A DNA stretch of 64,000 nucleotides, from the NCBI RefSeq assembly GCF_009834535.1, contig NC_045697.1, positions 10,664,001 to 10,728,000 on the forward strand, in the 5' to 3' direction. The stretch is from Camelus ferus. Lineage: Eukaryota. A model generated the notes under the pieces. That model made no database searches and was not told the origin of the DNA. It saw only the letters and a list, made by a program, of their open reading frames with translations. Both the position numbers and the translations under genes were made by a program. Shown one piece after another: positions 1 to 59,357 of this stretch (positions are counted from its first letter, which is position 1; each line of letters begins with the position of its first letter).

Positions 1-683
1 CGAGATTTTTCTGCCTCGCTCGTGCAGGACAGAACTGAATCCACCTCTGTGGAGTGTGATGAGGGGTTACTTGTCAAATGTGCCAATTCACAAAATTATA
101 AATTGACCCAGCAATTCTGCTTCTAGGAATACATACTTACCTGCACATTTGTGAAATAACTTGTTACACAGTATTTGTAACGGCAAAATGGTAGAAAACA
201 CATTAAAAGTAATGAACTACTTTGCAGCAATAAAAAAAAAAAGATGAGGAAGCTCTTAATGTACTAATACAATGACCAAAATATGCATTTACAAAGAAAG
301 CAAGGTGCCAAACAATATACACAATATGTTATCATCTGTGGAAAAAAGACCACAGACACACGTTTGCCTGCGTTACCAGAAAACAAATCGGAAAAGACAC
401 AGACACACAAATGCACACGCAAAACCTGCATACAGCGGTCGTCTGTGAAAGCAAGCTGGGGACTGAGAGCCAGGAGTGGGACAGAAGCTTCGCAACGCAT
501 ACGCTTTTGCACTTCTAAATTCTGAGTATGTAAATATATGTCACCAATTGAGAAATGGGTATTTTCTAAATTCGGTGAAATATGGGAACAAATCAAAGGT
601 GAAAAATACTGATAACTCAACTGAAAAAAATGAGCAAAGGCAAAATCACAAGTTTTTTTTGAAAAAAAAGAAATATATATGGT

Positions 684-776
684 GGGGGAGGGTATAGCTC
701 AGTGGTTGAGCGCATGCTTAGCATGCAGGAGGTCCTGGGTTCAATCCCCAGGATCTCCATCTTAAAAAAAAAAAAA
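684..776 (+). mobile_element. tRNA-Ala-derived SINE (camelid Vic-1 type), short form: head + poly(A)
   Basis: GGGGAGGGTATAGCTCAGTGGTTGAGCGCATGCTTAGCATGCAGGAGGTCCTGGGTTCAATCCCCAGGATCTCCA with intact A and B boxes, followed by an A-run. Confidence 0.88.
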
Positions 777-1174
777 GTAAAGAAAAATGGATAAAAGAAT
801 AGGACTGACCAATGATTAAAGGTACACAAAATAAAGCATGTTTTCTATAACATGTCAGACCGGCCAGATAGAGTCTTCATAACCACAGTTGGAAAAAGTG
901 TGGAGAAACAAGCATTTTCATGCACTAATACAGGGAATACAAAGTGGTATATAAATTAGAGAACAATGGTAATAGCGATGAAAATTTTAAATGCACATAC
1001 CATGGTACGTATGCCACGGTAATTCCTTTTCCAGGGATTCCTCGTACTGGTTGTATTGCCCAACTATAACTATGCAAGATACATATTCAAGAGTGGTCTT
1101 CATAGCAGTGTTTGAAACAGCAAACAACTGGGAACTCAAACATCCATTGCTGTGTCTAATCAATTCATTTTTCA

Positions 1175-1478
1175 AATCCCGAACCTGCAATATGATGGTA
1201 TTTGGAGGTAGGACCTTTGGGAGGTAATTAGGTTTAGGTGAGGTCACGAGCCTGGGCTCATGGTAGGGTTAGTGCTCTTCTAAGAAGAGGAAGGGACCAG
1301 AACCCTCTCTCTCCACCAAGTGAGGAGAGCAAGCCGTCTGCAAACCAAGAAAAGGATTCTCACCAGACATCAAATCCGCCGGCATTAAGATCTTGGACTT
1401 CCAGCCTCCAAGACTAGGAGAGACAAATGTTGACTGTTTAAACCACCCAGTCTGTGGTGTTTTGTTATGATTAAAACA
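1175..1478 (+). mobile_element. MaLR LTR (MLT1A/B-like)
   Basis: gtatttggaggtaggacctttgggaggtaattagg...ggacttccagcctcc...aaaccacccagtctgtggtgttttgttat. Confidence 0.85.
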
Positions 1479-2758
1479 GGCCCCAACTGGAAACCTCTCA
1501 AATGCCAATCCAGTAGGATGGATAAATAAATTATGGTATATTCACGTGACAGAACAACAGCAGTGAATATTTACAACTACATGCAACAACGTGGATGAAT
1601 CTCACAAATAAAATGTGAAGTAAAAGAAGCTAGAAACCAAAGAGAACATACTCCCCTACCAGGCATTGCTAACCTATACACTGAAAATCAGGAGAGGGTT
1701 TCCTTGGGGATAAGCTGGGGACAGCGACCGGGAAACGAGAGAGTTCTTCTGGGGGCTTCTTTTTCTTGACCTGGGGTCTAGTTACACAGATGTGTGCAGT
1801 TTAGTAAAAGCCATCGAGCTGCAGGTTTAGGTGCACTTTTCTATATGCATAAAATTGTTTAAAAATTTTTTTTCAATAAAAAATAGAAAATTCTGACTTA
1901 CTAGGTAGGGCCCAAGAATCTGCATTTGTAATAAACTCCTAAATGAGGCAGATGCTGTTGGTCCAAAGGACACACCTGGAGTAGCAGCGAGCTATGCCAC
2001 AAATGTCCAAGTGTACAAGAGAATTTCCAGGAACAGGCTTCGAGAACAATACACACCCCACCCCCAGCCTCCTTCCTGTTGCTTTGGTTGGCGTTACAGG
2101 TTTACTGAGTGATGTCCACTTCCCGCTGTCCGCAGAGCCCCGAGCACACGTGTTGGCATGACATTCCAGAGCCCATCTGCCATCTGCTCACAAGCTACTC
2201 CCCAGGCTTGTGGCCTGACAGCCTCCCAGACAAGCAGGGCTCTGGTCTCACTGCTCTACAAGACATATTCCACGAGCCCCTGTCTCAACATGCATCACTC
2301 GGGCCTCTGCTTGTGTACCTGCCATGCTCTCCTCTGCTTCCTGAACTCTTCCACAACCGCGCAGCTCAGTTCAAATGTTACTTCCTCCAGGAAGCCTTCT
2401 CTGATTGCCCCACAATGGCTAGTCCCTCCTCTGGACAGCCGAGAGCCCACTATTCGCACCTGACAGTCAGCATGGACCAGCCTGCCTGCATCAGAGCCGA
2501 CTGTGGAGGTGGAGGGCTCAGTGCTCAATGTCAGCCTTTTGAGAGCGGGGGAACCCAGTCTGTCTGCCAAATAGCACCAGGCCTGGCACCCAGTGGGTAC
2601 TCACTATACTTACAGCATTGAAATTCAAGAACTTGGAATCAGACAACCAGGTCTGAATCTCATTCCATTATTTTTCAGAAATATGACCTTGGGCAGATCA
2701 TTTAATATCTCTGAGCTGCTGGGGCTACCGGGAGAACTAAAGAAGTCTGTAATAGGTG

Positions 2759-3199
2759 TGGTGAGATGAATGTTGGCCCCCAAAAAGAATCAGCAAGTCC
2801 TGACCCCAGGAATGTAAGCTTATTTGGAAAAAGGGTCTTTGCAGATTAGGTTCGGGATCTCAAGGTGAGATCATCCCAAATATAGGATGGGCCCTAAATC
2901 CAATGACAGATGTCCTTATAAGAGAAAGCAAAGGGAGATCCAAGCCAGAGACACAGAAGGCAGCCGTGTGGAGAGGGGCAGAGACTGGAGTGATGCAGCC
3001 ACAAGCGAAGGACATCTGGAGGCACCAGGAGCTGGAGAAAGCCAGGAAGGACTGTCCCCTAGACCCTTCAAGGGAGAGTAGCCCTGCCAATATATTGATT
3101 TTGTACTTCTGGCCCCCAGAACTATAAGAGAATAAATTTCTGTTGTTTTGAGCCACCCAGTTTGTGATTATTTGTCACAGCAGCCCTAAAAAGCCAACA
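2759..3199 (+). mobile_element. MaLR LTR (MLT1C-like)
   Basis: ttatttggaaaaagggtctttgcagatt...ccctaaatccaatgacagatgtccttataagag...gagaataaatttctgttgttttgagccacccagtttg. Confidence 0.88.
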
Positions 3200-3289
3200 C
3201 AGTATAAGTCAAATAAATACTTGTTCTTCTGTCCATGTGATCACCGAGGTGTGACATTAATTTAAAAGTTTGTAATGAATATAGATTTT

Positions 3290-3530
3290 ATGCATTCATA
3301 GTTTATTTAACAAACATTCACATAGCTCTTAGTGTATATCAGACAATGTCCTAATTGCTTCATAAATATTATTTACTTAGATATTACGATGATCCCAAAA
3401 GTACTATTATTATTATTATCTCCATTTTTCAGAGGGAAAACTCTGGAACAGAGAGTTTAAGCAACGTGCCCAAGGTCACAGAGCTAGTCAACACAGGAGC
3501 CAGGAGTCAAACTCAGGCAGTGGCTCTAGA
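3290..3530 (-). mobile_element. MIR (representative; further copies at ~2620, 4360, 6230, 10400, 14290, 17500, 21850, 25590, 26790, 29070, 41330, 41670, 43940, 47480, 55290, 58400, 58720)
   Basis: MIR core ccatttttcagagggaaaact...gcccaaggtcacagagctagt. Confidence 0.8.
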
Positions 3531-6500
3531 GTGCTCACCACCGCTCAAGTGCCAGGCCCGTTTTGGAATCTAGACCCCAGCCAGGCAGAGGGTACGTGGC
3601 AGGGCTGCCCAGGGCCACCCGTCCTGGTAACGTCCCTCACACTCCTGCCCCAGCACTGCCCCGTCCAGACAACACTCGACAGCTGGATGTCCAAGCGCAC
3701 ATCCGAGAACTTCCCTTCCACTCAGTGGACCAGTGATGCCTCCCACCACGTGGGCTTCATCCAGCAGCTGCCCGGGGAAGGGGGCCATTTTATATTCATA
3801 CCTAATCTGTCTTTTCCTGGATGTATTTGAAGGCCTCCAAGAGAACGTCACCGCTGGGGACAGGGAAGCTTTCCTTCTCGTGTCTTGCTGGGGACTGGCC
3901 CACTTTTACTCCTCAGAAGGGAACAGCCTGCCTGCACCACTTTCTCGCAGGGAGGAGGCCGGGACAGGGCTCAGCACGACTTCATGGACAAGCTTATGGG
4001 AACACAGTCAACAGGTCTAGTTTTTCATCTTAGCTGCAGAAGCTGTACCATGATGGATGGACTAGAGGAGAGCCCGTTACTGTCTCCAGACACGTCCCCG
4101 CTCCTCAAACCCACCCACACTCATAGGTGGCATATATGCCATTTATTTGATCTGATATACAACAGATCCCCTCCACGGAGGCAACGCGGTGCAGCACAGG
4201 GGACAAGCCCAGGCTTGGGCGGCACAGGGCTCTGGGGCAAACCCTGGCTTGGTCCCTTAGCCATCAGTGCGTGTGACCTTGCCAACAGTCCCTCAACCTC
4301 CCTGAGTCTCTCTTTCCTTATCAACAAAATACAAGTGACGACTGTGAGCCTGGACAACAAACCCAGCTTGCCTGGCTTCAAACTTCGACCCTGCCCACTG
4401 GCTAGTGTGTGACCCTGGTCAAGCTCGTTAGCTCTCTGGACCTCTGCTTCCCCTTCTGTAAAATGAGGATAATAGTACCCAGCTCACAGAGTCACTGAGT
4501 TGTTCAAACCCCTGAAAGCAGGCACATAATAGCAGTTTGCTGTTATAATTGTTAAGATGCAAAGACATGACAGCTGTACCCTGCGCGGCACAGTGAGTGA
4601 CACCTGGGAAGGAGGACAATGGCTCCAGGACCCTATTTATAGCCAGGCCCGGTGCCAATGAGTCTCATGATCTAAAGAAGACAGTGCTGGCTCTGAATTA
4701 AGAACACGCAGGTGTTGGATACAATATAACCTCCTGATTCTAGGTGGACGTTGACACACACACACCTATTAGGCTGTCCACCCAACCCCTCTTTCCTGGA
4801 AACCACCTCCATGCCTGTGAGGCAAGGGGGACATTGACGGCTCGCAGCGCCAGGCCCACACACAAGGTGTCACTCTGGCCACGGCGACTTGATGGGCCCG
4901 TGCTTGGTGACTGGCCCAGGTGGGATGAGAACTGAGACTTGGGACTGAAAGAGAGAGAATGCCCAGCCACTCTCCAGGAAGCCGGCCTGAAACCTATGAA
5001 CTTGGCAGGTTCTCCACCATGAGGACTGCAGGAGGGGGGAACCCAGAGAGGGGGATGGGAGAGAGGAGGAGGAATGAAGTGGCCACCGGGCAGACAGCAG
5101 CCAAGAGGGAAGGAGGTGGAGTCCCTGGTGGCTGACCCCTCCCCCCACGAGGTAACCCAGAGTCCTGATAATAAACCCCCTTCGCTAATAGGCTTCTGTT
5201 ACCTCAACAGGGAGACTCCCACTGAATGTCACATCCTCACGCATCTCAAAGTCTGCAGAAACCACGCTTAATCCCTCCCTCTTCTGCAGGTCTGCCACTT
5301 ACCAGCTCCGCTCCCACGCCCGCCAACTCCAGGAAGCAAATCACATTAGCCCAAAACACTGATAGAAATAGGTCAACCATCCTAAAATCTAATTTTAAAA
5401 TATACCAACACAGAATGGAGAATGACTTTAGAAAACTTCTTTAAGAATAAAAGCAGAGGAGACCTTTTTCTTTGCTTCCTCCATTAGAAAGGCTCTAATC
5501 TGGGTCATGATTTACACTAACTTCATCCCAGACACACAAAACTGGAAAAGACACTGCTTACCATCCACACCAGATAATCTTCTGCACTGCATGCTTTTAA
5601 GGTGTAAAAATTACTATTTTTCGTATTTATTTCTTCATTTTAAAAGCACTATGATAAAATAAAAGGGAAATAAATTACCCACAAAGTAAGCTGCAGAATA
5701 TACGAGAAATAACTAGTCCTGGAGATGGGGGTTGGGGAGTCCTCAATCTGCCACTGGCTAGTTGTGTACTTTGAATGTGGAATCTCATCCTGACTTAGTT
5801 TTCCAATCTGTAAAGGGGGGTGTAATAAACAGAAGTTAGACCACCATCTACCACCATCAACTACCTGAGAGTCAAATGAGCTAACGCTTTGCACAGGATG
5901 CCTTACGGCAGATACTGGGGACAGCAGGGAAGAACCAACAGAGAAAAACAGAGCCCGTTAGATGCCAGTAGTTTTGTAGGAGTAGAGACTACTGAGTGAA
6001 CTAGCATTGCATCCAAGTCCTGGCTTCTAGACCCAGTCCTGCCACCGTGGGGCTTGCTGGGGAGATACAGCCCACGTAACCTCAAAAATAATGGAACGTA
6101 GCTCCGGATAGAACGGTCCTGAGGGAGCAGCAGCAGGGACAGCTTGATGAGCCCCCCTGGGACACCGTTTCTTTCCATATCCCTCCCGACACCAATCTGG
6201 GCATCAAATCTCACCCACTCTTCCCCTCACATGGCAATATTAATAGCAGCCACATGTACTGAGGATTTTTCTCTGTGCCTTGCAGACATGGTTTTAAACA
6301 GAGGCTTCACGTACATCAGCTCATTTCAGCCTCACAGATAAAAGCTACGGAGCGGGCTGTGATTATAGTCATACTACATCTATGAGAACAGAGGTTCTGA
6401 AAATTAACTTGGCCAAGAGCACCCTGCAGGTAACAGGCAAGAGCTAGGACTTAAACCAAGCCTTTTGGACCTAAAATGGATCCTGACCCTGTTCCCCCAT

Positions 6501-8625
6501 CGCCTTCGCCTCATTCCACGTTAGTTCATTATTACCACCCTCCCTGTGACCTATCCTACCAGCTGCTGTCGGATTCTTTTCCCAAAACCCAGCTTCACAT
6601 CCACGCTGGCTCACAGCACCCAGCGAGGCGCACCACAGAAGGCAGGGCTTTCAATAATGCTTCTCGAGTGAATGAAGCCTTTGCTCCTGCTGCCTTAGCT
6701 TCTGTCCCCCTACAGAACCCCCTGGCCTACCAGTCCAGGTACTCCAGCTCTGGCTTCCCAACCTTGGCGGACTTATTCCACAGATACACGCCCCATAGGT
6801 CCACCATGAACCAATGTCTCCTTCACTCCCCGGACAAGCCATTCTCTCTGCCTGGAATGCTCTTTCCCCAACTCCCTCTCCCACCCTCCATCCCCAGCCC
6901 CCACCCCCACCCTCACCCCCCACCCCCAGCCCCTCCTCACTCATCCTGCCATCAACACCTTTTCTAGGTTGAATGCATAGACTGACGACTCCTCCCAAAT
7001 GTAAGCCAACACTCTCTGCTTAGAGAGCCAAGCCCAGGTCACCACTCCGCTCTGGCAACTTCAGTCCAGGGCAGGGATTTATGAAATACCCACACCAGGT
7101 TCTAGAGCACATTCTGCCACAGTGTATAGTTACCTGTCTTCCTGGTCTTTTCTTCTGTCCAGGAATAAGCCTTTGTCTCAAGCCCCAGCTAAACTAGACC
7201 TTTCCATTTTGTATTTACCAAGATATAACATGGTACAACTTCTCTTTAGGGAGTTCCAAATGCACAATTTGGTACACCATTTTGGTCATACATGGGATGT
7301 GAAAGTGGAAAACTCCCCAGTCCGAGGGCATGAAAAGACAGAGTCCAGGTTTCAGGGCCCTCCTCCCTTCCTCTTCTGCTCTGTGCTGGGACTCTGCATT
7401 CAAAACACTTCTCCCTCACGTGGAACAATAGACCTGTGGGATATTACCATCTGTGAAGATGTTACTCCACAGAAGACTTGTCCATAGTCATCTGTTTTGG
7501 TTAGTGTACTACATTAGTTAACCTAATGAACGGAAATCCATCTCTCTCCCTCTTGCTCTATTTTTTTTTTTTTTTTTTGCATCTTCAATTATGATGACAT
7601 CTGCCTCTGTTTTGATGCTCATGAAATGCACCGGCCCCAAATGGAAAAACTATGATTGTCTCATATGTTTTCTTTATGTTGCAAAGCACCTAATGGGCAC
7701 TTCAAGACTATTATGAAATCCAGTAACTGGGTGAAAGAATAGAAATAATGAGCTGATGGAAGAAAATCAACAGTCCAAGACGTCACCTGCTAACTTCAGT
7801 ATTATATTCTCTAAGCAACCTAACGGTGATTTTGAAAGGGGGAGTACTGGTCTGCTCTGGTCTACTTTTGAAACTTCTGGGAGTTTCTTTCTCTGAAGTA
7901 ACAAGTATTAATGAAGGTCAAGGGACAAGCAAGGCCAACAGCCTCAGATTACATTAGGATTCAAATTCTAAACTAATAATGACATTGGAGTCGAAAACCT
8001 CGGAAAGCACCAGAAAGATGTCTTTTAACCTGATCATTTGAATGAAGACCTTTAAAAACACTGCTTTTCCTTGTAAAATATGTGTGAGGAAGTCTTCCCA
8101 AGAAGTCTAGAAGGAGCAAAATAGAACAACATATGGAAACAGATTACAGGATTAACTAATTACATGATCTGTCTTAGAATGACCCATGGAAGATGCTCAT
8201 CACAGTCTTTTTAAAGAAGTCATTGTAAATTCATATTAAACAACAGAATTCTATGCTTTTTACATTAAAAGAAAAAAACAACAAAGAAGCCAAGACTAAA
8301 AACACTAGTAGATACTTGTTTATTTAATTTTATTTACATCAAGTCTAAAAACAAATGAAGAACTATTTATTGAGAATAGTGAACTTGTATTCAACATTAA
8401 TAAATAAACTCAGTTTATTTTCTGCTTCTGCCCTTAGGATTTCCAAATTTAGTCGCTCAAGCAGTGACATAAACAGCAAGCACTCTCCTATGACAGCAGG
8501 GCTCAGAGTGATTTATTTCACTCAACTGAAATTTAAACTAAAAATGGAGAACTACACTTCAAACTGTTTCAACTGCTTAATCTGAGACAAATATAAAGGA
8601 AAGTTTCAACATAAATGTATATTAA

Positions 8626-8735
8626 TGATGCAACACGGATGGACCTGGAGGGTATTACGCTTAGTGAAGTAAGTCAGACAAAGACAAACACTTTATGATA
8701 TCACATATAAGTGGAATCTAAAAAAATAAAACAAA
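8626..8735 (+). mobile_element. Short LINE-1 3' UTR fragment
   Basis: gcaacacggatggacctggagggtattacgcttagtgaagtaagtcagac...gtggaatctaaaaaaa. Confidence 0.8.
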
Positions 8736-8821
8736 GGAACATTTAAAAATGTACATGAACGAAAATCTATGAACTGCCTGTAATAGAAACAAGAGCTGAA
8801 GTTCACAAAATATATTCTCTC

Positions 8822-8867
8822 GCTTTCTCTCTTCCCCCTCTCTCTTTCTCTCTCTCTCACACACACA
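8822..8867. repeat. Compound (CT)n(CA)n microsatellite
   Basis: ctttctctcttccccctctctctttctctctctctcacacacaca. Confidence 0.85.
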
Positions 8868-9730
8868 AATAATCTTCTTGTGAACAACAGCTGACCAGCT
8901 AAAGAAGATGATAACATTACTACAAATTTTATAATTTTTAGTAATCATGCTCATCTTCAAATCTTCATAGTTTAAAGAACAAGCTTAAGCTAGATCTAAC
9001 ATTAAATCAATAAAAATTTAGACTGCCAAACCCTAATAGCAGGCACTTGCCACACACCATTTACATTCTCATCACCCCACACTTGAGAAACACAGAGCCC
9101 CAAGACTCGGGAGTACAGAGGAGGAGCGGTGGTAAGGCTAAACAGTAGGACTGGTACAGAACAGCCCGGTGCCGTGAACACGCCCTCCCACCCTCACTCA
9201 GACTCTTAGAACTGAAGCAAACAGTTACCCAGGTAACAGGCTCCGTCCAGCCTGGCCTTGCCCTGAGCAATAGTCAAAACTGCATTTTGTGGTGGGTGGG
9301 GGAGTTACATTTGTAATTTTAAATGGTCATGAAAGGTCATTATTAACTTCTCATTTGATGACAGAGAAGTTGCATCTTTATCCTAATTTTTACCTTTGGT
9401 ACGTACTTGAGAATAATCCAATGCACTAATCAGATGAAAAAAAAAAATAAAAGGGAGGAGATGGAGGATAAAGAACTGGAAAAACAGCGCAGCAATGCAG
9501 TTTGATTTCATTTCTTATGTTCACACTCCCGACAACCTATTTAACCTGGTTTTCTTAATTTCTGTCTCAATACTTTCGGCTCCTGTGCAATTCAATCGTT
9601 TTTAATCTCACACGTTAAAATACTGAATATATTCTACACGGATGGTGTTGTCATTAACAAACAATATCGTGTGTGTGCACCTGAGCGTGTCTAGGGACCA
9701 ACCCTACCTTTTCCCGCAACCGGCACTTAC

Positions 9731-9950
9731 CTTCAGGGAAAGCATGGGGCTGCACGGTGTGGAGAAAGATGTGCACCATCTGAAAGAGGATGCCAGTGGG
9801 TCCAGCTTCATAAGAATCTTCGGTCTCATAGTTTGTTGGAGGAAATTCAAATTCCAAACGATCAAAACTGTTGGTGGATGGTGGCGACCCCTCTGAAACG
9901 GTGTCCCCACACAGCCCCAGCAGCAGGAAGAAGCCGAGGACTGGGGCCAT
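9731..9950 (-). CDS. PROM1: Prominin-1 (CD133) first coding exon: MAPVLGFFLLLGLCGDTVSEGSPPSTNSFDRLEFEFPPTNYETEDSYEAGPTGILFQMVHIFLHTVQPHAFPE + 1 nt (signal peptide and start of the N-terminal extracellular domain)
   Basis: The translation matches the PROM1 N-terminus as I recall it (human MALVLGSLLLLGLCG...[37 protein letters not shown]). The ATG at 9950-9948 has a strong Kozak context (gctATGg). The donor GAAG|GTAAGT falls after exactly 220 coding nt, as in human (c.220+1). Confidence 0.97.
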
Positions 9951-10165
9951 AGCTAGCAAGATGCCCCAAACATGAGGTAGGACTGGGGGCCTTTTGCCTC
10001 AGAGGTTCTGGAAGCCTGGAGGACTGTGATGCTGTGCAGAAGAGGCGTGGTGAGGACTGAGTGTGCTGAGCCCTCGGTTTTCCAGGCTGGGCTGGCATGC
10101 GGTGATGGGCGGCAGAGAATGTTCTCCGGGGAGTGGAGGGTGGTCAGCCGCTCAAGGCACCATCC
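9951..10165 (-). other. PROM1: 5' UTR part (215 nt) of the first coding exon of PROM1
   Basis: Polypyrimidine tract and acceptor ccccttctctccctgccag|GGATGGTGCCTTGAG on the minus strand. The sequence next to the ATG (ctacctcatgtttggggcatcttgctagctATG) resembles the human leader as recalled. Confidence 0.88.
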
Positions 10166-11861
10166 CTGGCAGGGAGAGAAGGGGCAGCGGTCACTAATGC
10201 ACGCAGCCGGCCTGCAAGCGCAGCTTCCCTGGAGGAGAGGCTGCAAAGCTTTAGAGCAAGCCCTCAGCCTAATCCGCTGTCGGGGATGCAAACACAGAGC
10301 CTGCTTCAGAGCGCAAGGGCAGGAAAGCTAGAAGGTTCCAGGGACCAGACCCAGAAACACCAGGTAGTGAAGTGCATGTGCAGTCTTAGAAGCTGCCATT
10401 TATTAAGCACTTACTACATGCCAGACATGTTCTACATGCTTTGCAGGCAGGCCCTCGGTTAAGGCGTTATCCCGCTTTACAGATGACCCAGATAGCATGT
10501 CAGTGACTTGCCTGGGGCCACGGCTGATTCACAGTGGGACAGAATTCAAACCCAGTCATTTGCTTTAACTATGAACTCTAACCACAGCTCCAAGACACTG
10601 TCCCTGCAGAGCCCTCCCTCCCAGTCAGAGAAGCGAAGGCCCCCAGCAATAGACGATAATGCTTGTTTATTTCCTCCAGTTTGGGGTTGTTCTCCCAGTC
10701 TCTGGAGATACGCCTTTTATTCTGCTATGTGCTCACATGATCTCATCTCAAATATCCCTGTTTCCACTCACCCTCAACCCAAACTAGATGAGCGTGGCCT
10801 GCCCAGGCAGGGACCACACTCTTCAAGGCCGGGTGACACTGGACTCTGCCTTCCTAACACACTCATCAGGTAGCCCTGATGGAAATCCCTGCCCCAAGTC
10901 ACCACCTGGACAACTCGGGGTCCAGGCGATGAGAGGCAGAGCAGAGGGAGGCTCCCACCCACCCCCGGGAAAAGGGAGAAGGATCAGGAATCTAGAAGTG
11001 CTACCAGCCCAGTGTCCAGTGAGAGCAACGTTGACCCTGTCCTCCTCGAATTTCTATCCCCAGAACTGAACACAGGCTGAATCAAAACAGAACCTCCCAG
11101 AGCAGCCGGGATGCTCTGCTTGTCCTTACTTCTTTGGGGTCAGAAAACACCCTGATTTTATTTTTCATGTTAGATACACACTCGATAACTTTCAGAATAA
11201 GGACAGGGTGCTCCTGAAACACATACTGTGAGATGGGGGAGAGGGACCACCAAGAAAGTGACACACTGTATGAGGGCCCACCACCTATATCACAGAAATA
11301 GGTGGTGTCAAAGAAAGCTCCGGACAAGAGGTAGTACTACACGAGCTGTTTGAATGAAGATGCTCATTCATATCGGGTACCCTTGGATATGGGCTCATCC
11401 TCTAAGCCCCATCCCACTCCAACTGCTTCTGCTCTGACCTGCCAGCGGAATGACCCTGGATCCTCCCTTTATGAAATCATGGGCTGCCCAGATCTTCTAT
11501 GGAGCCCAGTGCCAAACTCATCAAACCCCAAGCTTCCAGCTCCATCTCCCCTACAGACCCACCAGGACCCTGGGCACTGTTTCCAAAGGGCAGTCCCTGC
11601 CAGGCATGGCCGCTGTCCCTGTCCTCGGGCTCTGAAGTGCTTAACCTTTCCCGGGTTCTACTAGGAATCAGCGCTCTGCTCAGTCTTCAGATCATTTCCA
11701 GAGAGAGTACATGAGAAGGAAACAAAGCATGCCAGCTATTTCGCAAAGCCCCTCTCTGGAAGTCTGCAGGACCAGCACTGGGTAGGAGGAAGATGGGAAG
11801 GTGGGGGGAGGGGGTGTGGTTATTCAGGTAGGATACGACCACGCTCCTTTAGGCAGGCAGG

Positions 11862-12088
11862 ATGCGCACACACATCACACACACCATGCATTCACTCACA
11901 CTAACACACAACCCACATACACACAACACACATACACGCAACACACTAAATATACCAGGTACATATGGTCCACAGCCAGCACACTCCACACACATACATG
12001 CCACATACTAACACCCACATGCACACACACACACTCACAAGCATCACACATAATACACACATCATACATAAACACACACACCACGCTC
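11862..12088. repeat. Degenerate (CA)n low-complexity tract
   Basis: Interrupted cacaca/catac runs. Confidence 0.9.
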
Positions 12089-15000
12089 ACATCTTATCTT
12101 GTTGTCTGTTAAAGGACAGGCAGGAGCCTGATGGAAGGATTAAGGGCTCAGCTGCTAAGAAAGGCTGACTTCCTGGTAATGCCACCAAGCCTCAGCCAGG
12201 GACACAGAGAAACAGCGGGAGGGAGACGGCGGAAGGCCCACGGGAGATCTGTGACTAAAGAGACCTTCCAACTCCCTCAGAGAAGAAGCAGGGGAAAGGA
12301 AATCCCAAATGAAATGGGAAGACAGGGTGTCAGGGGAGTTGGCACCTGAGCGGCATGTGCAGGTTTCTTTACATCTTGCTCTAGAACTCTTTAAGTTTAA
12401 GAGCATAATAAAATCTCACTACTTATGAAACACTAGACAATTGATACACACCAAGTCGGAAAGGAAGTTATACATCTCAGTTTTAATCAGCTGTGCCCAA
12501 AAAGAAGGTCTGGCTACTTCCCTATGAAACCACCACAGGGAGCCAGCGCCACTGAGAGCAGCTCAGGGAGCTGCCGGCAGAAAATCCAGGAAAGCTCTCC
12601 CGACTCATCAGCTGCATCAGCATCAAACGGGGTGTTTATTTCAAGTGCAGATGATCGATCGGAACTAATCTCTCAAGATGTGGCTCATTAATCTGCATCT
12701 TTAACCCACTGCCCCTGTGAGTAATTAGTAAAACAAGTAAGATTTGAGAACCAGCACTGTTCCCACGGACCCCCTGGCTAATCCGTGCTATTTTCCAGAC
12801 ACCTCAATCTTCCCAAACACAACTGCAGAACAACAGGCACAAGACAAAAGCTCCCCAAGTCCCCTTCTTACATTGAACTGACTGGGCCCAACGTCTGCGT
12901 GGGGGGTCCCTGACTTACTCATCCTCTCTGCACCCCGGGAGCCCAGCACGCGGTAGGCACTCAGTAAGGACTGCTGAAATCAAACGGCGGCAGGCAGAGA
13001 GAAGACTGACAAAGTGGTCATGTTTACCTGTTTCAGAACTGACCAAGCATCTGTTGATAAGCAGCCTCCAGCCTCTGCAAGGGAGGTGCTGGACTGCTTA
13101 CAGCTGTTTCCTCCAACACAAGCAGCAGACTGTCGCCTCGCTGGAGTCATCCACGGCGGAACAACCGGCCTACCATTCTGGGCGCCATACTTTCAGCTGG
13201 GACCCTCGACTTCACAGGCTTTGGAACCGGCTCCCTCAGGGCCTCTCTCGTCACACAGGCACCGGACTATAATCAATAAGGGCGAGTCACCATTTTCTGG
13301 TTTGCGGGGTGCAGATTCCTGGTTTCTACTCCAAATGCACTGAATTCAGATTGGGAAAGGGACCCAAGAACATGAATTTTAAGCAAATACCTCACATGAT
13401 TCTGAGCCTGGAGTCCAGGGATGGGCACGTCCACAAACACTGGTTTAAAAACAAATACAATGACCATCCAGCTTCATTTCTGCTCTCCTTTTTTTGACGG
13501 AAATTTTGAAGGACTTTTTTAAAGGATCTGTAGATGTTTGTTATCTTGGGTTTACTGAGGGGGTGGGGCACGATGGGAGCTGCCCAACTTCTGAGCCAAC
13601 CTTTGTGAGTCCTGTGGGTGGCCGTCTTGCCTCTCATTGTGAGGCCCGCTGAGGTGCCCAAACTGAGCCCAAGCTTGGCCAGTCAGATGCTTACTCCTGG
13701 GCTTGTGCAGGAGAGACACACTGAGGCAGAGGTGGTGTCTACCTCATCCAAACAATGATGGCGGCCTGCCAGCAGCCACAGCCAGTCTCTGGGGGCAGCC
13801 ATGGCCATACACCAATCAGGGGACCTGCTGCATGTCCTGTGTCCCACTCCTCCAGGCTCCTCGGCCTGGCTAGCCAGCCCTCCTGTCATTTCTCTAAGCC
13901 ACCCAGTATCCAGTCCCTTTTTCTGCTTAAGTTATCCAGAGTTGGTTTCTGTCGCCTTGTAACAAAGCAACCTGACCTTTAACAAATCTCAAAGCAAGTT
14001 CTCGGCCCCTGCAAAACCCAATTGTTCATATTTTAAACAGTACCAACAAAACAATATTTGATTTAAAGTTTTATTATTTCCCACTTGTCCTCTGATGCAC
14101 TTTGCTTCACTGACTTGCCATTTAGGGGGAAAACAAAGTAAAACTGGGTCCTTATCTAGACACACAGAAATAGCCCAGCATGCAACTCTTAAGGAAGTTC
14201 ATTTAAAAAAAGATTAGGGGACCCATTAAGAAAACAAAACTAAACTGAAGGGCGCTGCTGCAAGGACAAGAGCCCTCGCTTTTGAGACGGGGACATCTCC
14301 AGTCCCACTGATGAGCTCTGTGACAGTAGTCGCTTACAATCTCCAAGCTGTCCTCTGCTCATCTGTAAAATGGGGTTTGGAATTGTGTGCGAGGGCTGCA
14401 GCTGGAACAGGTACAGGCCCTGCCGCACAAACACCTGGCAGGTGTGGTGGAGGGTGTGTACGGCCACTGCACAGAGAAATAGTCTAAACTCCACCGTGGA
14501 TCCCAGGCTCACCCTGGCAGGCAGGGCAGCTCCGAGGGTACTAAAGGCGGAAACTCACAAAAGAGTGAGGAAAGAGGTAGAAACTTCACACACTAAGTTG
14601 CCTTGATAGTCAAGTCTTCGACCCACAGAAAGCGGCAATTTCATGTAGTTCAACCAACCATCACCAGCAGCTGTCTGAGTCTCCAGTGGGTTTATGTTGC
14701 GGTTGGGAGAAGGGGTGTTCAAGGCCCTTAATCATACACCTGCTGATCTTAACAAAGGTCAGCCGCCGCCCACCGGAACCCGGGAAAACCTTTCTCAAGC
14801 CGGGGCAGGAGAAAGGTCAGCAGCCTCCGTGGGCTACAGGCGCAACCTGTTGCTGCAGAAAGCTAGCGGTAATGGCTTCCTCGGTCTTTCCCTCCAATCC
14901 AAAGACAGGCCGGGGCCCCTCCGGGGCTCGCTCCATCCCGGGTAGGAGCCTCTCTCGGGCTGCGGGACAAAGGATAAGCCGCAGGGCGGGCGCGGGAAGC

Positions 15001-15994
15001 GAGGAGACTCGAAGGAATCCGCCGCCGCCTGGGGGAGGGGGTTGCCGGAGTAACTTGGCTGCGCCCGGCGCGCCAGCGCGGGTTCCCGGCCGCATGCAGG
15101 TTGGTATGGATCGGGGGTCGCCAGTGGAGGGGTGGTGAGGGTCCTGAGCGGTGTGCCTCAAGCCCCCGTGGATCGGATCCCCAGCCCCCGCGCGGACTTT
15201 CGGGAAAACTGACTCCAGGCTGCCGACTCTCCCGCACCGCGAAGCTCTCCCTCCGTCCACGTTTCCCTTTGTTGTCCTGGCCCGCGCCGTACAGGCGCGG
15301 TGCGCCGCGATCTCTCAGTTCTCCCTCCAGCAATCGCCGAACGTCCCCGCGCTGTGCACCCAAAGTGGGCAGAGGGATGCTTCAAGTCAGGGGAGCGAGT
15401 GCTCCCTCATGGGCGCGGCCATAAGGCCTCCCACTGCACCCCCCAGAGCCCCCGTCCTGTGATGGACAGTTGCCCAGCGTACTCCATTTAGAAAACCAGA
15501 GGAAGGTGACCCCTTCCCATACCCAGCCCGGGAGGGTCAGTGCCCCGCAACCCCGGGTCACTCTTCAGCAGAACAGTTCTCAAGTCCCGGGCGAGCCTCC
15601 TCTCGTCCTTCGCCCTCTCAGAGACCCAGCTGGCAACCTCGGGGTCTGGGTCGCGCTCGCTCTCCCACCGCCAGCTCGCGCCCCGGAACCTGGCGAGCCA
15701 CTGCCGCCGGCTCCCCCGCAGCGCATGGCAAGAACACCCACCACGCAGCCCGCAAAGTTTGCGCGCGTCTGCCCCCCGCCCGGAATCCCCGCTGGCTCCC
15801 CCGCCGCTCTTGGAGCTCGCACCACCTGCCACGGGGCCGGGGAGGGGACGCCGAGGGCTGGGCGGAGACGGGCGCAGAGCGAGCCCTTCCATTCCCCATT
15901 CCCCGCCCCAGCTTTCTGGAAAGGGGAGCGCTCAGCCTCGCGGTCGAGTCCGCAGATACCTCCCGAGCCCCGGGATGAAGATGCAGCTACTCAC

Positions 15995-16062
15995 CGCGCG
16001 CCGGGTCCAGCTCCCTCTTCTGCCCTCGCCGCCGCAGCCGCCGCCCCCTTTGCTCATAGCCC
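15995..16062 (-). other. PROM1: Candidate non-coding first exon of PROM1 (donor GCG|GTGAGT; 5' end uncertain)
   Basis: Consensus donor with intron starting at 15994, inside the CpG island. A CATAAA TATA-like element lies on the minus strand at 16096-16091. Confidence 0.55.
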
Positions 16063-16309
16063 CCCTCGCCCGGCCCCGGCTCATGAATGATTTATGAGTC
16101 GGCCTCGGGGACCACCGGGACGGCTTCCGGAGAGGCCGCCTGGCTGCCCCGCGCGCCAGCCAGACCCCCGGACGGGGCGGGCCCGGAAAGGCGCCTGTCC
16201 TGGAGGCCCGCCGGCCAGGAGCAGGGTGACGGCGGCGACCTGTTGCGGCCTCCCCCGCTCCCGGACGGTTGCGGCCGGCGGAATGCACCGCTTCCGTAAA
16301 CGTACTCAC

Positions 16310-16340
16310 CCGCGGCGGGAGAGCCGAGCGCGCGGCCAGG
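16310..16340 (-). other. PROM1: Candidate non-coding first exon of PROM1 (donor GGG|GTGAGT; 5' end uncertain)
   Basis: Consensus donor with intron starting at 16309. TTTAAA at 16366-16371 lies upstream on the minus strand. Confidence 0.5.
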
Positions 16341-16496
16341 TGCCCGGTGGGGACTGGATGGGGACTTTAAAGAGCGCTAAGCCCGGGGTTCTGCCCGCCC
16401 TCCCGGTTGGACCAGCTGAGCAGCTTCGCCACGATGCCCCAGGGTACCCACAGGGACCTCGCTGCATCCATTTCCTGCCGCCGAGAGTCCCCTCAC

Positions 16497-16560
16497 CCGA
16501 GCACGTTCTTCTCCCAACACCCACGCCTCCTTTACGCAAGCAGAGAGGGCTACTCGGAAC
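16497..16560 (-). other. PROM1: Weaker candidate non-coding first exon (donor CGG|GTGAGG; 5' end uncertain)
   Basis: Donor-like site with intron starting at 16496, at the distal edge of the CpG island. Confidence 0.3.
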
Positions 16561-17532
16561 GCCGCTGCTCTTCCACAAACTTCTCTCTCTCTTTCCAACT
16601 CAGACCTGCCTCGGTAACAACCCGTGACGCTTTAGATGCTTCTATTACCAAATTTCAAGACTTTTTTTTAATGCACCCAAATAAAAGAAAACTCAAATCA
16701 TTTGGTTCCTTGACGTGTACTAACCGCAATGCCAGCGGCTGGAGCTATAAAACCGGCAAAAAGCAGTCCTTAACCCCTTATGTGCACACAGGCATCCGCT
16801 ATAGCTGCAAACATTGAGCGTTAGTGACTCTTTGCATATCGGTCTCTCGCCTATGAGTTGCCTGCCATTTCCGCAGGCTAAGTGATGGAAATCTTCTGCC
16901 AGAAGCAACCACTCCAACTACACACACCGACGTTCATCTCACTCTTCCCTCCCTACTTCCTATCTTGAGTGGAGAGTATAGTCTGATAGGAAAAAAGACG
17001 ACCTACAGAAGACAAGCACCTTCAGGACGGTGTCTAGCACACAGTAGGTGTTCAAGGCTTGTGATATAGGATAAATGGGAAGGACGAACAGACCAACGAT
17101 TGAAAGATGGACAGTAACGTTAATTCAGTAGCTCTCTCACTTACCCCAGAACCTAGCACAAAACAGGTGTTGGAAAGAGTGTGATTTGTCTGATTTATAG
17201 TTAAAAGTTTAAATTGATCTTGAATGCGCGTATTTCCAGGGCAAATGCTAGTTCTGGAAACTTATGAAAACTGCAGTACAGACATAGCCAGGTTAGGCGA
17301 GATGTCTAATCAGGCCTGATGTTTCCTCCTCTGAAAGCCCCTGTTGGTTGGGGCCCCTGATGGAACACCTCCAGAGGCCCCAGCACTTCTGCTCAAAGGC
17401 CACCCTCTCTAGGTGGGGCCCAGAGGTGAGTTCTTCCCTCCTGAGAGCAGCCAGCTGTGTCCTGCCTCAAATTTTAGCCCTGTCTTTTTTCATCAGTGCT
17501 TAACCTAGCTAAACCTCAGTTTCCTTGTCTGC

Positions 17533-17582
17533 AAAAAAAAAAAAAAAGAAAAAGAAAAAAAAGAAAAGAAAAGAAAAGAAAG
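17533..17582. repeat. A-rich / (AAAAG)n tract inside a MIR
   Basis: Direct reading. Confidence 0.9.
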
Positions 17583-18172
17583 ATAATTAAGCCTCACAGG
17601 GCTCATTCTTATCCCTAATAATAAAAACAGTAATAATAATTATAACTGTAGTAGTGGTGAGAGCTAAAACTTAATGAATTTTCACTTCAAATGCGATACT
17701 ATGCCAAGCGTTTTATGTGCATTATTTCATGTAATCTTAGCAATAAGAACAGCATATCCCCATCTTAAAAATAAGGCTAAAAGAGTTTCAATAATTTGCC
17801 CAAGGTCACAAACCTAGTAAGAGAAGTACTGAATTTGAACTCAGATCTGGTCTCCAAAGCCCATGATTGTTCTAACACACCAGTGCACAGAAAGATAATA
17901 TAAAACCCCGACAGATGATGTAGTGTGGATTGAAAAGGTCAGCCATCTGTCTTCCTGCAACTGCTTTTATCTCAGATCCCCCAACCCCACTCTAACTGGA
18001 TCGTCCTAGGTGTTTAATAATTAAATGAATAAATAGTAAACATAGAACACAATATTAAGATCTGTTCTGAACAGCCTAAGGCAGACAGTGACAGGACCTA
18101 ATGATTTGTTCTGTTCAATTTAACCTGGAGTTCTAATGCTATAGTTCTGTTATTTGGCACAACTGAATTTCT

Positions 18173-53289: not shown

Positions 53290-54520
53290 TGAAAAAAAGT
53301 CACTACACTGACAAGGATGGTTCTATTGAAAAAGATAACAGCAGGCGCTGTAAGGATGTAGGGCGATTAGCGCCCTCATGCCTCGCTGGCGTTTAGTTCA
53401 GCTGCTTTGCCAAACAATCTCACAGTTTCTCAAAAGGTTAGAGATGGCCCAGCGATTCCACTCCCAGGGATGTACCCAAGAGACATGACAACATATGTCC
53501 ACANNNNNNNNNNNNNNNNNNNNNNNNNNNNNNNNNNNNNNNNNNNNNNNNNNNNNNNNNNNNNNNNNNNNNNNNNNNNNNNNNNNNNNNNNNNNNNNNN
53601 NNNNNNNNNNNNNNNNNNNNNNNNNNNNNNNNNNNNNNNNNNNNNNNNNNNNNNNNNNNNNNNNNNNNNNNNNNNNNNNNNNNNNNNNNNNNNNNNNNNN
53701 NNNNNNNNNNNNNNNNNNNNNACCATACATTGTAAGAAATATCCAGAACTGGCAAATCTATAGACAGAAAGTATATTAATGGTTGCCTGAGGCCAGGGTG
53801 GATGAGATGCGGAGTGACTACTAATAGGTATGGGGTTTCTTGTGTAGTTACAAAAATGTTCTAAAATTGATTGTGGTAACGGTTGCATGACTCTATAAAT
53901 ATACTCGAAATCATTGAATCCTATTCCTTAAATGGGTAGATTTTATGATATGTGAATTATATCTCAATAAATCTGTTATAAAAATTAGTCATGAAAAATT
54001 ATGTCTACACAAAAACCTGTCTAGCAGCTTTATTCGTAACTGCCAAAATATGGAAGCAACCAAAACGTCTCACAGTAGGTGAATGGATAAATAAACTGTG
54101 TTCCATCCAGATAATGAAATATTATTCAGTGCTAAAAGGAAGTGAGCCATCAAGGCATAGAAAGACCTGAAGGAGAAAACTTCAATGCATTTTACTAAGT
54201 GAAAGAAACCATTCTGAGAAGGCTGCAGAGTGTATGATTCCAACAATCTGACTTTCTGGAAAAGGCAAGATTATGAAGACAGTAAGAAGATCAGTGGTTG
54301 AACCCTCATGAACACTATGGATTTCGGGTAGGCATGATGTGTCCATGTCCATGTGGGCTCATCCATTGCAGCAAATGTACCACTCACTGGGGGAGGTTGA
54401 TAGTGGGGCAGAGGTTGTGCGGGTCAGGGGCCAGGGTGCATATGGGAACTCAGTTTTGATGTGAACTTAAACTGGCCTTAAAAAACAAGGCCTATCCAAA
54501 AAATAAAATCACTTAAAGGA
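53290..54520 (+). mobile_element. Stacked old L1M (L1MB/L1MC-like) 3' fragments spanning an assembly gap
   Basis: cccagcgattccactcccagggatgtacccaagagac; gcaaatctatagacagaaagt...ggttgcc; gtaggtgaatggataaataaactgtg. Confidence 0.8.
53504..53721. other. Assembly gap (218 N)
   Basis: Run of N. Confidence 1.
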
Positions 54521-58836: not shown

Positions 58837-59357
58837 CAAAGTATGCCTGCGCTTAGGAGATTCTTTTTCTGCAGTTTCAGTGCTGGATCGCCGCAATGAA
58901 GCCAGTCCCTCAATAAAGCGAGGCACACATTTTTTGGTTTCCCAGTAAATCTAAAAGTTATGTTTATTTAATACTGTATTCTACTAAGTGTGCAATAGCA
59001 GTGTATTAAAAAAAAGATTGTATGCATATGTATGACTGAAACATGATGTATGCTAGAAATTGACACACTGTCAACTGACTGTACCTCAGTAAAAAAATGA
59101 AAAAATGTGCATACCTTAATTAAAAAATATTTTACTGCTAGAAANNNNNNNNNNNNNNNNNNNNNNNNNNNNNNNNNNNNNNNNNNNNNNNNNNNNNNNN
59201 NNNNNNNNNNNNNNNNNNNNNNNNNNNNNNNNNNNNNNNNNNNNNNNNNNNNNNNNNNNNNNNNNNNNNNNNNNNNNNNNNNNNNNNNNNNNNNNNNNNN
59301 NNNNNNNNNNNNNNNNNNNNNNNNNNNNNNNNNNNNNNNNNNNNCGATGTATGCCTG
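58837..59357 (-). mobile_element. Tigger1-type (Tigger1a-like non-autonomous) DNA transposon spanning a gap, with a nested L1 tail at ~59016-59099
   Basis: Left end TA+caaagtatgcct...ggaga...ccgcaat...caataaagcgaggcacacattttttggtttcccagt...aaaagttatgttt...aagtgtgcaatagca matches a Tigger1 terminus as recalled. The right end gtatgcctg is the inverted repeat. Confidence 0.78.
59145..59344. other. Assembly gap (200 N)
   Basis: Run of N. Confidence 1.

Follow-up and report, generated by a model that had tools for sequence, protein, structure and literature searches.

Upstream open reading frames (uORFs) are present in roughly half of mammalian mRNAs; the scanning model predicts that ribosomes will use an AUG that lies near the 5' end in a strong context. 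Conserved regulatory uORFs of the generic mammalian kind keep a start codon and an in-frame stop across orders, while the encoded peptide is free to vary. In the leaders of C/EBPα and C/EBPβ, a uORF whose stop lies a few nucleotides ahead of the AUG that it regulates governs start-site selection, as reportedly described by Calkhoven et al. in 2000. Leaders of the ATF4 type place a short 5'-proximal uORF in good context ahead of an efficient, out-of-frame uORF that overlaps the main ORF, with a clear path to the main AUG for ribosomes that bypass the latter. The first uORF of ATF4 is three codons long, more than half of the translating ribosomes reinitiate after it, and the layout is conserved among vertebrates (PMC11058473).

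Here we compare these systems with the 5' leader of PROM1 in Camelus ferus, using a window of 64,000 nucleotides (NC_045697.1, positions 10,664,001 to 10,728,000), to which all camel coordinates below refer. The product of PROM1, prominin-1 or CD133, is a widely used stem-cell and tumor marker, and PROM1 is a retinal-disease gene; the level of CD133 protein is often equated with that of its mRNA. A previous sequence-only reading of this DNA had proposed that the leader forms an ATF4-like uORF relay through which CD133 output could be gated by stress at the level of translation.

Materials and Methods

The camel leader was compared with those of 12 other mammals, using the DNA around short gene calls of this exon in public assemblies. 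The relatives were a suid (L001), the gray whale, the coppery titi monkey (L009), mouse (L005), a rat-like murid represented by a transcript (L014), a ruminant-like sequence (L010), and six further mammals, one of them also represented by a transcript (L013). Identities are given per column, with camel as the reference. Searches of JGI metagenome contigs, using peptide patterns and a DNA pattern at the exon end, yielded no orthologs.

Results

The first coding exon of PROM1, the homolog of human exon 2, occupies positions 9731–10165 and, like all PROM1 features described below, lies on the minus strand. Its 73-residue product matched the Pfam family Prominin, was identical (100%) to a protein of Camelus ferus, and shared 73% identity with prominin-1 of pig, which bears out the gene assignment made in the sequence-only reading. 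The PROM1 protein of Bos mutus, searched by tblastn, matched this exon alone within the 64-kb window. The window therefore holds the 5' end of PROM1 and comprises part of the next intron (1–9730), the first coding exon, the upstream introns, and a CpG island. Within the exon, a leader of 215 nt (10165–9951) precedes 220 nt of coding sequence (9950–9731) that specify the signal peptide and N-terminus. The start codon (9948–9950) has a strong context, with G at both −3 and +4. In alignments, the pig, gray whale, titi monkey, and mouse proteins begin at this same codon. Runs of N were seen elsewhere in the window, at 53504–53721 (218 bases) and 59145–59344 (200 bases).

Several lines of evidence agree on the 5' boundary of this exon. 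A polypyrimidine tract and AG splice acceptor can be read in the sequence at 10166–10185, ending in ...ctctccctgccAG (10167–10166) so that the exon begins at 10165; this acceptor is kept in all 11 genomic orthologs, with an identity of 0.79. The spliced rat-like transcript contig L014 leaves mouse genomic sequence exactly at the exon boundary, where it carries unrelated sequence 5' of GGATGG and mouse genomic DNA has an acceptor at the same point. The first base of a second spliced transcript contig, L013, falls 3 nt before the boundary. At the other end of the exon, both transcripts run on into the next exon at the splice donor GTAAGT (9725–9730). Human PROM1 exon 2 spans 16077741–16077309 with its start codon at 16077529 (hg19), which gives a leader of 212 nt (Sompallae et al., PMC3810939) compared to 215 nt in camel. 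Judged by genomic orthologs, transcripts of other mammals, and human coordinates, the boundary placed at 10165 by the sequence-only reading is supported.

The leader contains three upstream ATGs (uATGs), and a script check reproduced every coordinate, codon count, and spacing previously reported for them. uORF1 (10152–10163; ATG GTG CCT TGA, MVP*) has three codons and a strong context: its +4 base is G and its −3 base, which is the last base of whichever exon is spliced upstream, is G in transcript L014 (the last base of its exon 1) and at all three candidate camel donors. uORF2 starts at 10098, 53 nt after the uORF1 stop, runs for 78 sense codons in frame +1, and stops at 9864–9862, overlapping the coding sequence by 89 nt (9862–10098 overall); its context is weak, with C at −3 and C at +4. 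uORF3 (9953–9973; MFGASC*, six codons) also has a weak context, with C at −3 and T at +4, and stops 2 nt before the main ATG, which itself lies 201 nt after the uORF1 stop. The number of camel uATGs is no more than composition gives, with three observed against 1.83 expected from leader shuffles (P for at least three = 0.27); across the 13 leaders pooled, 39 uATGs were observed against 26.9 expected. The predicted RNA fold of the camel leader was no more stable than those of shuffled sequences (z = −0.28), and a structured-element or IRES-like reading was dropped on that ground. An Rfam search of positions 9000–18000 matched no family.

A CpG island at 14751–16750, 5–7 kb upstream of the start codon, is the candidate region for first exons, with a GC content of 0.64–0.76 and an observed/expected CpG ratio of 0.72–0.97. 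A simple donor scan predicted candidate first-exon donors at 16496, 16309, and 15994, each with G as the last exon base, in agreement with the earlier claim that all three CpG-island donors supply a G at −3 of uORF1; weaker candidates lie at 17144 and 14512. In human, promoters P1–P3 are located in a CpG island 8–10 kb upstream of the start codon (PMC3810939), and the camel island is likely their counterpart. A further human promoter, P6 (16077254–16077627), begins within exon 2, past uORF1, at −98 relative to the start codon, and gives a much shorter 5'UTR (PMC3810939). Transcripts from P6 would bypass uORF1.

The exon-1 fragment of the rat-like transcript found no match when searched in the camel window. 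In that transcript (L014:1–30), exon 1 brings its own uATG (ATGCGGGATGG), which opens an eight-codon uORF overlapping the uORF1 start; first exons can therefore add uORFs to the shared leader, and upstream exons in camel may likewise add uATGs. Assuming an hg19-to-hg38 shift of −1623 bp, we take cDNA position 51 of human NM_006017.3 to be base 5 of exon 2, which is the G in the start codon of uORF1. A human variant at this cDNA position is filed under 'GE_Change_in_existing_uORF' (PMC10771650 Dataset S1), and the MANE transcript and its main CAGE peak dominate in retina (PMC10771650 tables).

Conservation within the leader peaks at uORF1 and uORF3. Identity to camel was 0.90 for uORF1 and 0.81 for uORF3 (0.94 for its ATG block), compared to 0.65 for the whole leader and 0.74 for the first 70 nt of coding sequence. 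The ATG triplets of uORF1 and uORF3 persist in 92% and 100% of species, respectively, which places them in the top 2–5% of leader triplets; this conservation exceeds chance. The leaders vary in length from 151 to 230 nt and are rich in indels between the two conserved uORFs.

The uORF1 ATG is present in 12 of the 13 mammals (the exception, L012, reads ACG) and the uORF has three codons in 11, being extended to 14 codons in L003 by a 2-nt insertion. Codons 2 and 3 vary (GTG/CTG/GTA/GTC and CCT/CTT), and in L015 the stop has changed from TGA to TAA and is thus retained. Every species has the uORF3 ATG, in each case 23 nt upstream of the main AUG and with a weak context. In 11 of the 13 it is followed by exactly six codons and a TAG at −5 to −3, 2 nt before the main ATG, without indels, while the peptide differs between species (MFGASC, MTGASH, MFGGSC, MRGGPC, MSGGSC, MFRPSY, MFQRLH, MRAGSG). 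The two murids have lost this TAG, which opens an overlapping ORF of 39–40 codons. A start and in-frame stop are thus kept across orders, with the peptide free, for both uORF1 (11–12 of 13 species) and uORF3 (11–13 of 13). The sequence-only reading had placed both uORFs in human as well, and they are indeed common to the titi monkey and most of the mammals sampled. The human uORF3 peptide that it gave, MFGGSC*, also proved accurate: in reverse complement, the inner primer used for RACE by Sompallae et al. reads ATG TTT GGA GGA TCT TGC TAG (PMC3810939 Table 2).

uORF2 shows a different pattern. Its ATG occurs in seven of the 13 species, and the 50% retention of the triplet is average for the leader (67th percentile of triplets). 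The weak context noted in camel extends to all seven carriers (−3 is C or T and +4 is C). Frame and length drift among them, from 7 to 80 codons, and the uORF overlaps the main ATG in only two, camel (78 codons) and L003 (80 codons). In the gray whale it ends at the uORF3 stop, in L004 at −35, and in L013, where it is in frame 0, at −51; it spans 7 codons in the ruminant-like sequence and 28 in L015. AAG takes the place of the ATG in the titi monkey and L012, as does AGG in L016; the ATG is also absent from the murids, and the suid leader lacks about 44 nt (window 10099–10142) including the uORF2 ATG region.

Other species have overlapping uORFs from other starts. A uATG absent from camel, TGAATGA, lies 4 nt after the uORF1 stop in the titi monkey, mouse, rat-like murid, and L012; in the first three it opens a uORF of 70–98 codons that overlaps the PROM1 start, and in L012 the uORF ends before it. 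A third start, at −85, gives an overlapping uORF in L016. The suggestion that the uORF2 ATG is not in human, so that the ATF4-like step may be lineage-specific, fits its replacement by AAG in the sampled primate, but an overlapping uORF as such is not confined to the camel lineage, because the titi monkey, mouse, and rat-like species have one from the TGAATGA uATG. In total, overlapping uORFs occur in six of the 13 species and begin at three different positions. In most species the leader is open in frame +1 over most of its length, and about a third of uATGs would be expected to lie in this frame; because the frame is nearly stop-free, any uATG in it overlaps the main ATG automatically. Convergent maintenance of an overlapping uORF was rejected for this reason. 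Judged from these alignments, the overlap looks passive rather than selected, and, most likely, camel uORF2 is a by-product of a frame with few stops and sees little use.

Two further sequence elements were observed in and near the leader. The sequence CTACCTCA at 9973–9980 is the canonical 8-mer match to the let-7 seed, and its last base is the A of the uORF3 ATG. Seven of the 13 mammals have it intact (camel, L002, L003, L009, L012, L013, and L015), and mouse retains a 7-mer of it; no paper was found on let-7 acting on the PROM1 leader. Outside the leader, an intronic block at 10241–10310, 75–145 nt upstream of the acceptor, has an identity of 0.76–0.83 across mammals, above that of the leader. 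It carries CTCTAAAGC (10256–10248) and GGATTAG (10275–10269), the latter resembling an OTX/CRX-type homeodomain site. The block as a whole may be regulatory DNA for retina-expressed PROM1.

Discussion

The reading that we favor, and to which we give about an even chance, is that the two conserved mini-uORFs constitutively hold prominin-1 synthesis back to a moderate degree, as a brake that depends on the promoter used. It builds on the uORF anatomy, exon boundary, conservation, and start contexts described above. The ribosome behavior that we infer would run as follows. With uORF1 placed right at the 5' edge of the exon, splicing from any upstream first exon would add it to the transcript, and most scanning ribosomes would translate it given its strong context. 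uORF1 is so short that many of these ribosomes would be expected to resume scanning, with 201 nt in which to regain competence before the main AUG; that it is permissive for reinitiation is supported by the equally short ATF4 uORF1, which lets more than half of ribosomes reinitiate. uORF3, with its weak context and its stop 2 nt before the main AUG, would divert a minority of ribosomes, and the strong main AUG would take the remainder. Transcripts that start inside the exon, as from human P6, would escape uORF1, so that the brake would be set by promoter choice. The size of the effect is likewise inferred, and the translational effect of uORF1 and uORF3 could be negligible.

The same conservation might have other causes, and we consider it possible, if rather doubtful, that the conserved islands are kept for splice-acceptor or exonic-enhancer function, the context of the main AUG, the let-7 site, or P6-like promoter DNA, with uORFs that lack a meaningful translational effect. 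The conservation of uORF1 is confounded by its position beside a highly conserved acceptor that several first exons must use, and it extends into the intron; even so, the uORF1 stop survives a change from TGA to TAA, and a strong-context AUG so near the 5' end should be used on established knowledge of scanning. For uORF3, the G of its TAG doubles as the −3 base of the main AUG, and the let-7 seed match that overlaps its ATG in seven of the 13 species may be a further confounder. Against this, the invariant uORF3 core ACCTCATG includes the T and G of the ATG, which lie outside the let-7 site, three species with a broken let-7 seed still keep the ATG, and 11 species keep the exact length of six codons free of indels. 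Part of the constraint may act on the DNA rather than the mRNA, as this part of exon 2 lies within the reported human P6 promoter region, and the uATG count is at chance level. We regard as improbable a diversion of the C/EBP type, in which ribosomes that end uORF3 just before the main AUG would reinitiate downstream, for example at the in-frame Met at codon 58 of the camel exon, which would yield a protein lacking the signal peptide or just a loss of output, in a share that depends on initiation-factor activity. The closely placed stop in 11 of 13 species and the presence of Met58 suit this alternative, and the underlying C/EBP principle is established; set against them, the weak uORF3 context in all species would place few ribosomes on the diversion path, the murids have replaced the arrangement with an overlapping uORF, and prominin-1 without its signal peptide is not known to have a role.

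The ATF4-like relay put forward in the sequence-only reading is the least probable of the explanations weighed here. Under it, ribosomes reinitiating after uORF1 would be captured by uORF2 in unstressed cells, and eIF2α phosphorylation would let them bypass uORF2 to reach the PROM1 AUG, raising CD133. The camel geometry does fit, with a strong three-codon uORF1 followed after 53 nt by an out-of-frame overlapping uORF and a main AUG 201 nt past the uORF1 stop; this spacing is comparable with the ATF4 layout (PMC11058473), and some overlapping uORF exists in six of 13 species from three different uATGs. On sequence grounds, however, the relay is not supported: the leader shows neither an efficient inhibitory overlapping uORF nor a clear path to the main AUG, and the architecture is not conserved. 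Taking start context as the proxy for efficiency, uORF2 is weak in all seven carriers; it retains its overlap in only two of them, its ATG is missing from the suid, titi monkey, murids, L012, and L016, and the overlap itself appears to be a passive outcome of a stop-free frame. The uORF3 ATG intervenes between uORF2 and the main AUG, present in all 13 species, and would catch some of the bypassing ribosomes. Given so leaky a uORF2, a low supply of ternary complex should reduce rather than raise reinitiation at the main AUG. It seems very improbable, too, that the conserved uORF pair couples promoter choice to translation while a middle uATG in the +1 frame, as in camel, primates, and murids, adds sensitivity to eIF2α phosphorylation and so uncouples CD133 protein from mRNA under stress. 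Our literature search found no study of PROM1 leader uORFs, no paper linking CD133 translation to eIF2, and no report of stress gating of CD133; an apparent match, an EIF4G2 paper, uses CD133 merely as a marker and was set aside.

If uORF1 and uORF3 do act as a promoter-dependent brake, the choice of promoter would change the protein yield per transcript, and loss of the uORF1 start through rare variants in the human 5'UTR could alter prominin-1 dosage. The variant filed as a change in an existing uORF would, under the shift assumed above, be an example of such a loss. Because roughly half of mammalian mRNAs have uORFs, the PROM1 result is unsurprising: this is a routine conserved-uORF leader, of use for annotation.

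Compared to the known systems, camel PROM1 is like the ATF4 and GCN4 leaders in having a three-codon 5'-proximal uORF followed by a longer, out-of-frame overlapping uORF at distances of the same order. It is unlike them in that the overlapping uORF is weak and unconserved in presence, frame, and length, and in that a third uORF intervenes; the layout of ATF4 is conserved among vertebrates (PMC11058473), whereas in PROM1 other lineages use other uATGs or none. The resemblance to the C/EBPα and C/EBPβ leaders lies in uORF3, a short, out-of-frame uORF that ends 2 nt before the main AUG in 11 of 13 mammals; the differences are its weak context and that no functional isoform of prominin-1 from a downstream start is known. 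A further comparison is with the generic conserved regulatory uORFs of mammals. PROM1 shares with them the conserved start and stop, the fixed length, the free peptide, and a leader common to alternative promoters, and shows nothing distinctive beside them. The PROM1 leader is thus an ordinary leader with two conserved, putatively translated uORFs, of a known kind.
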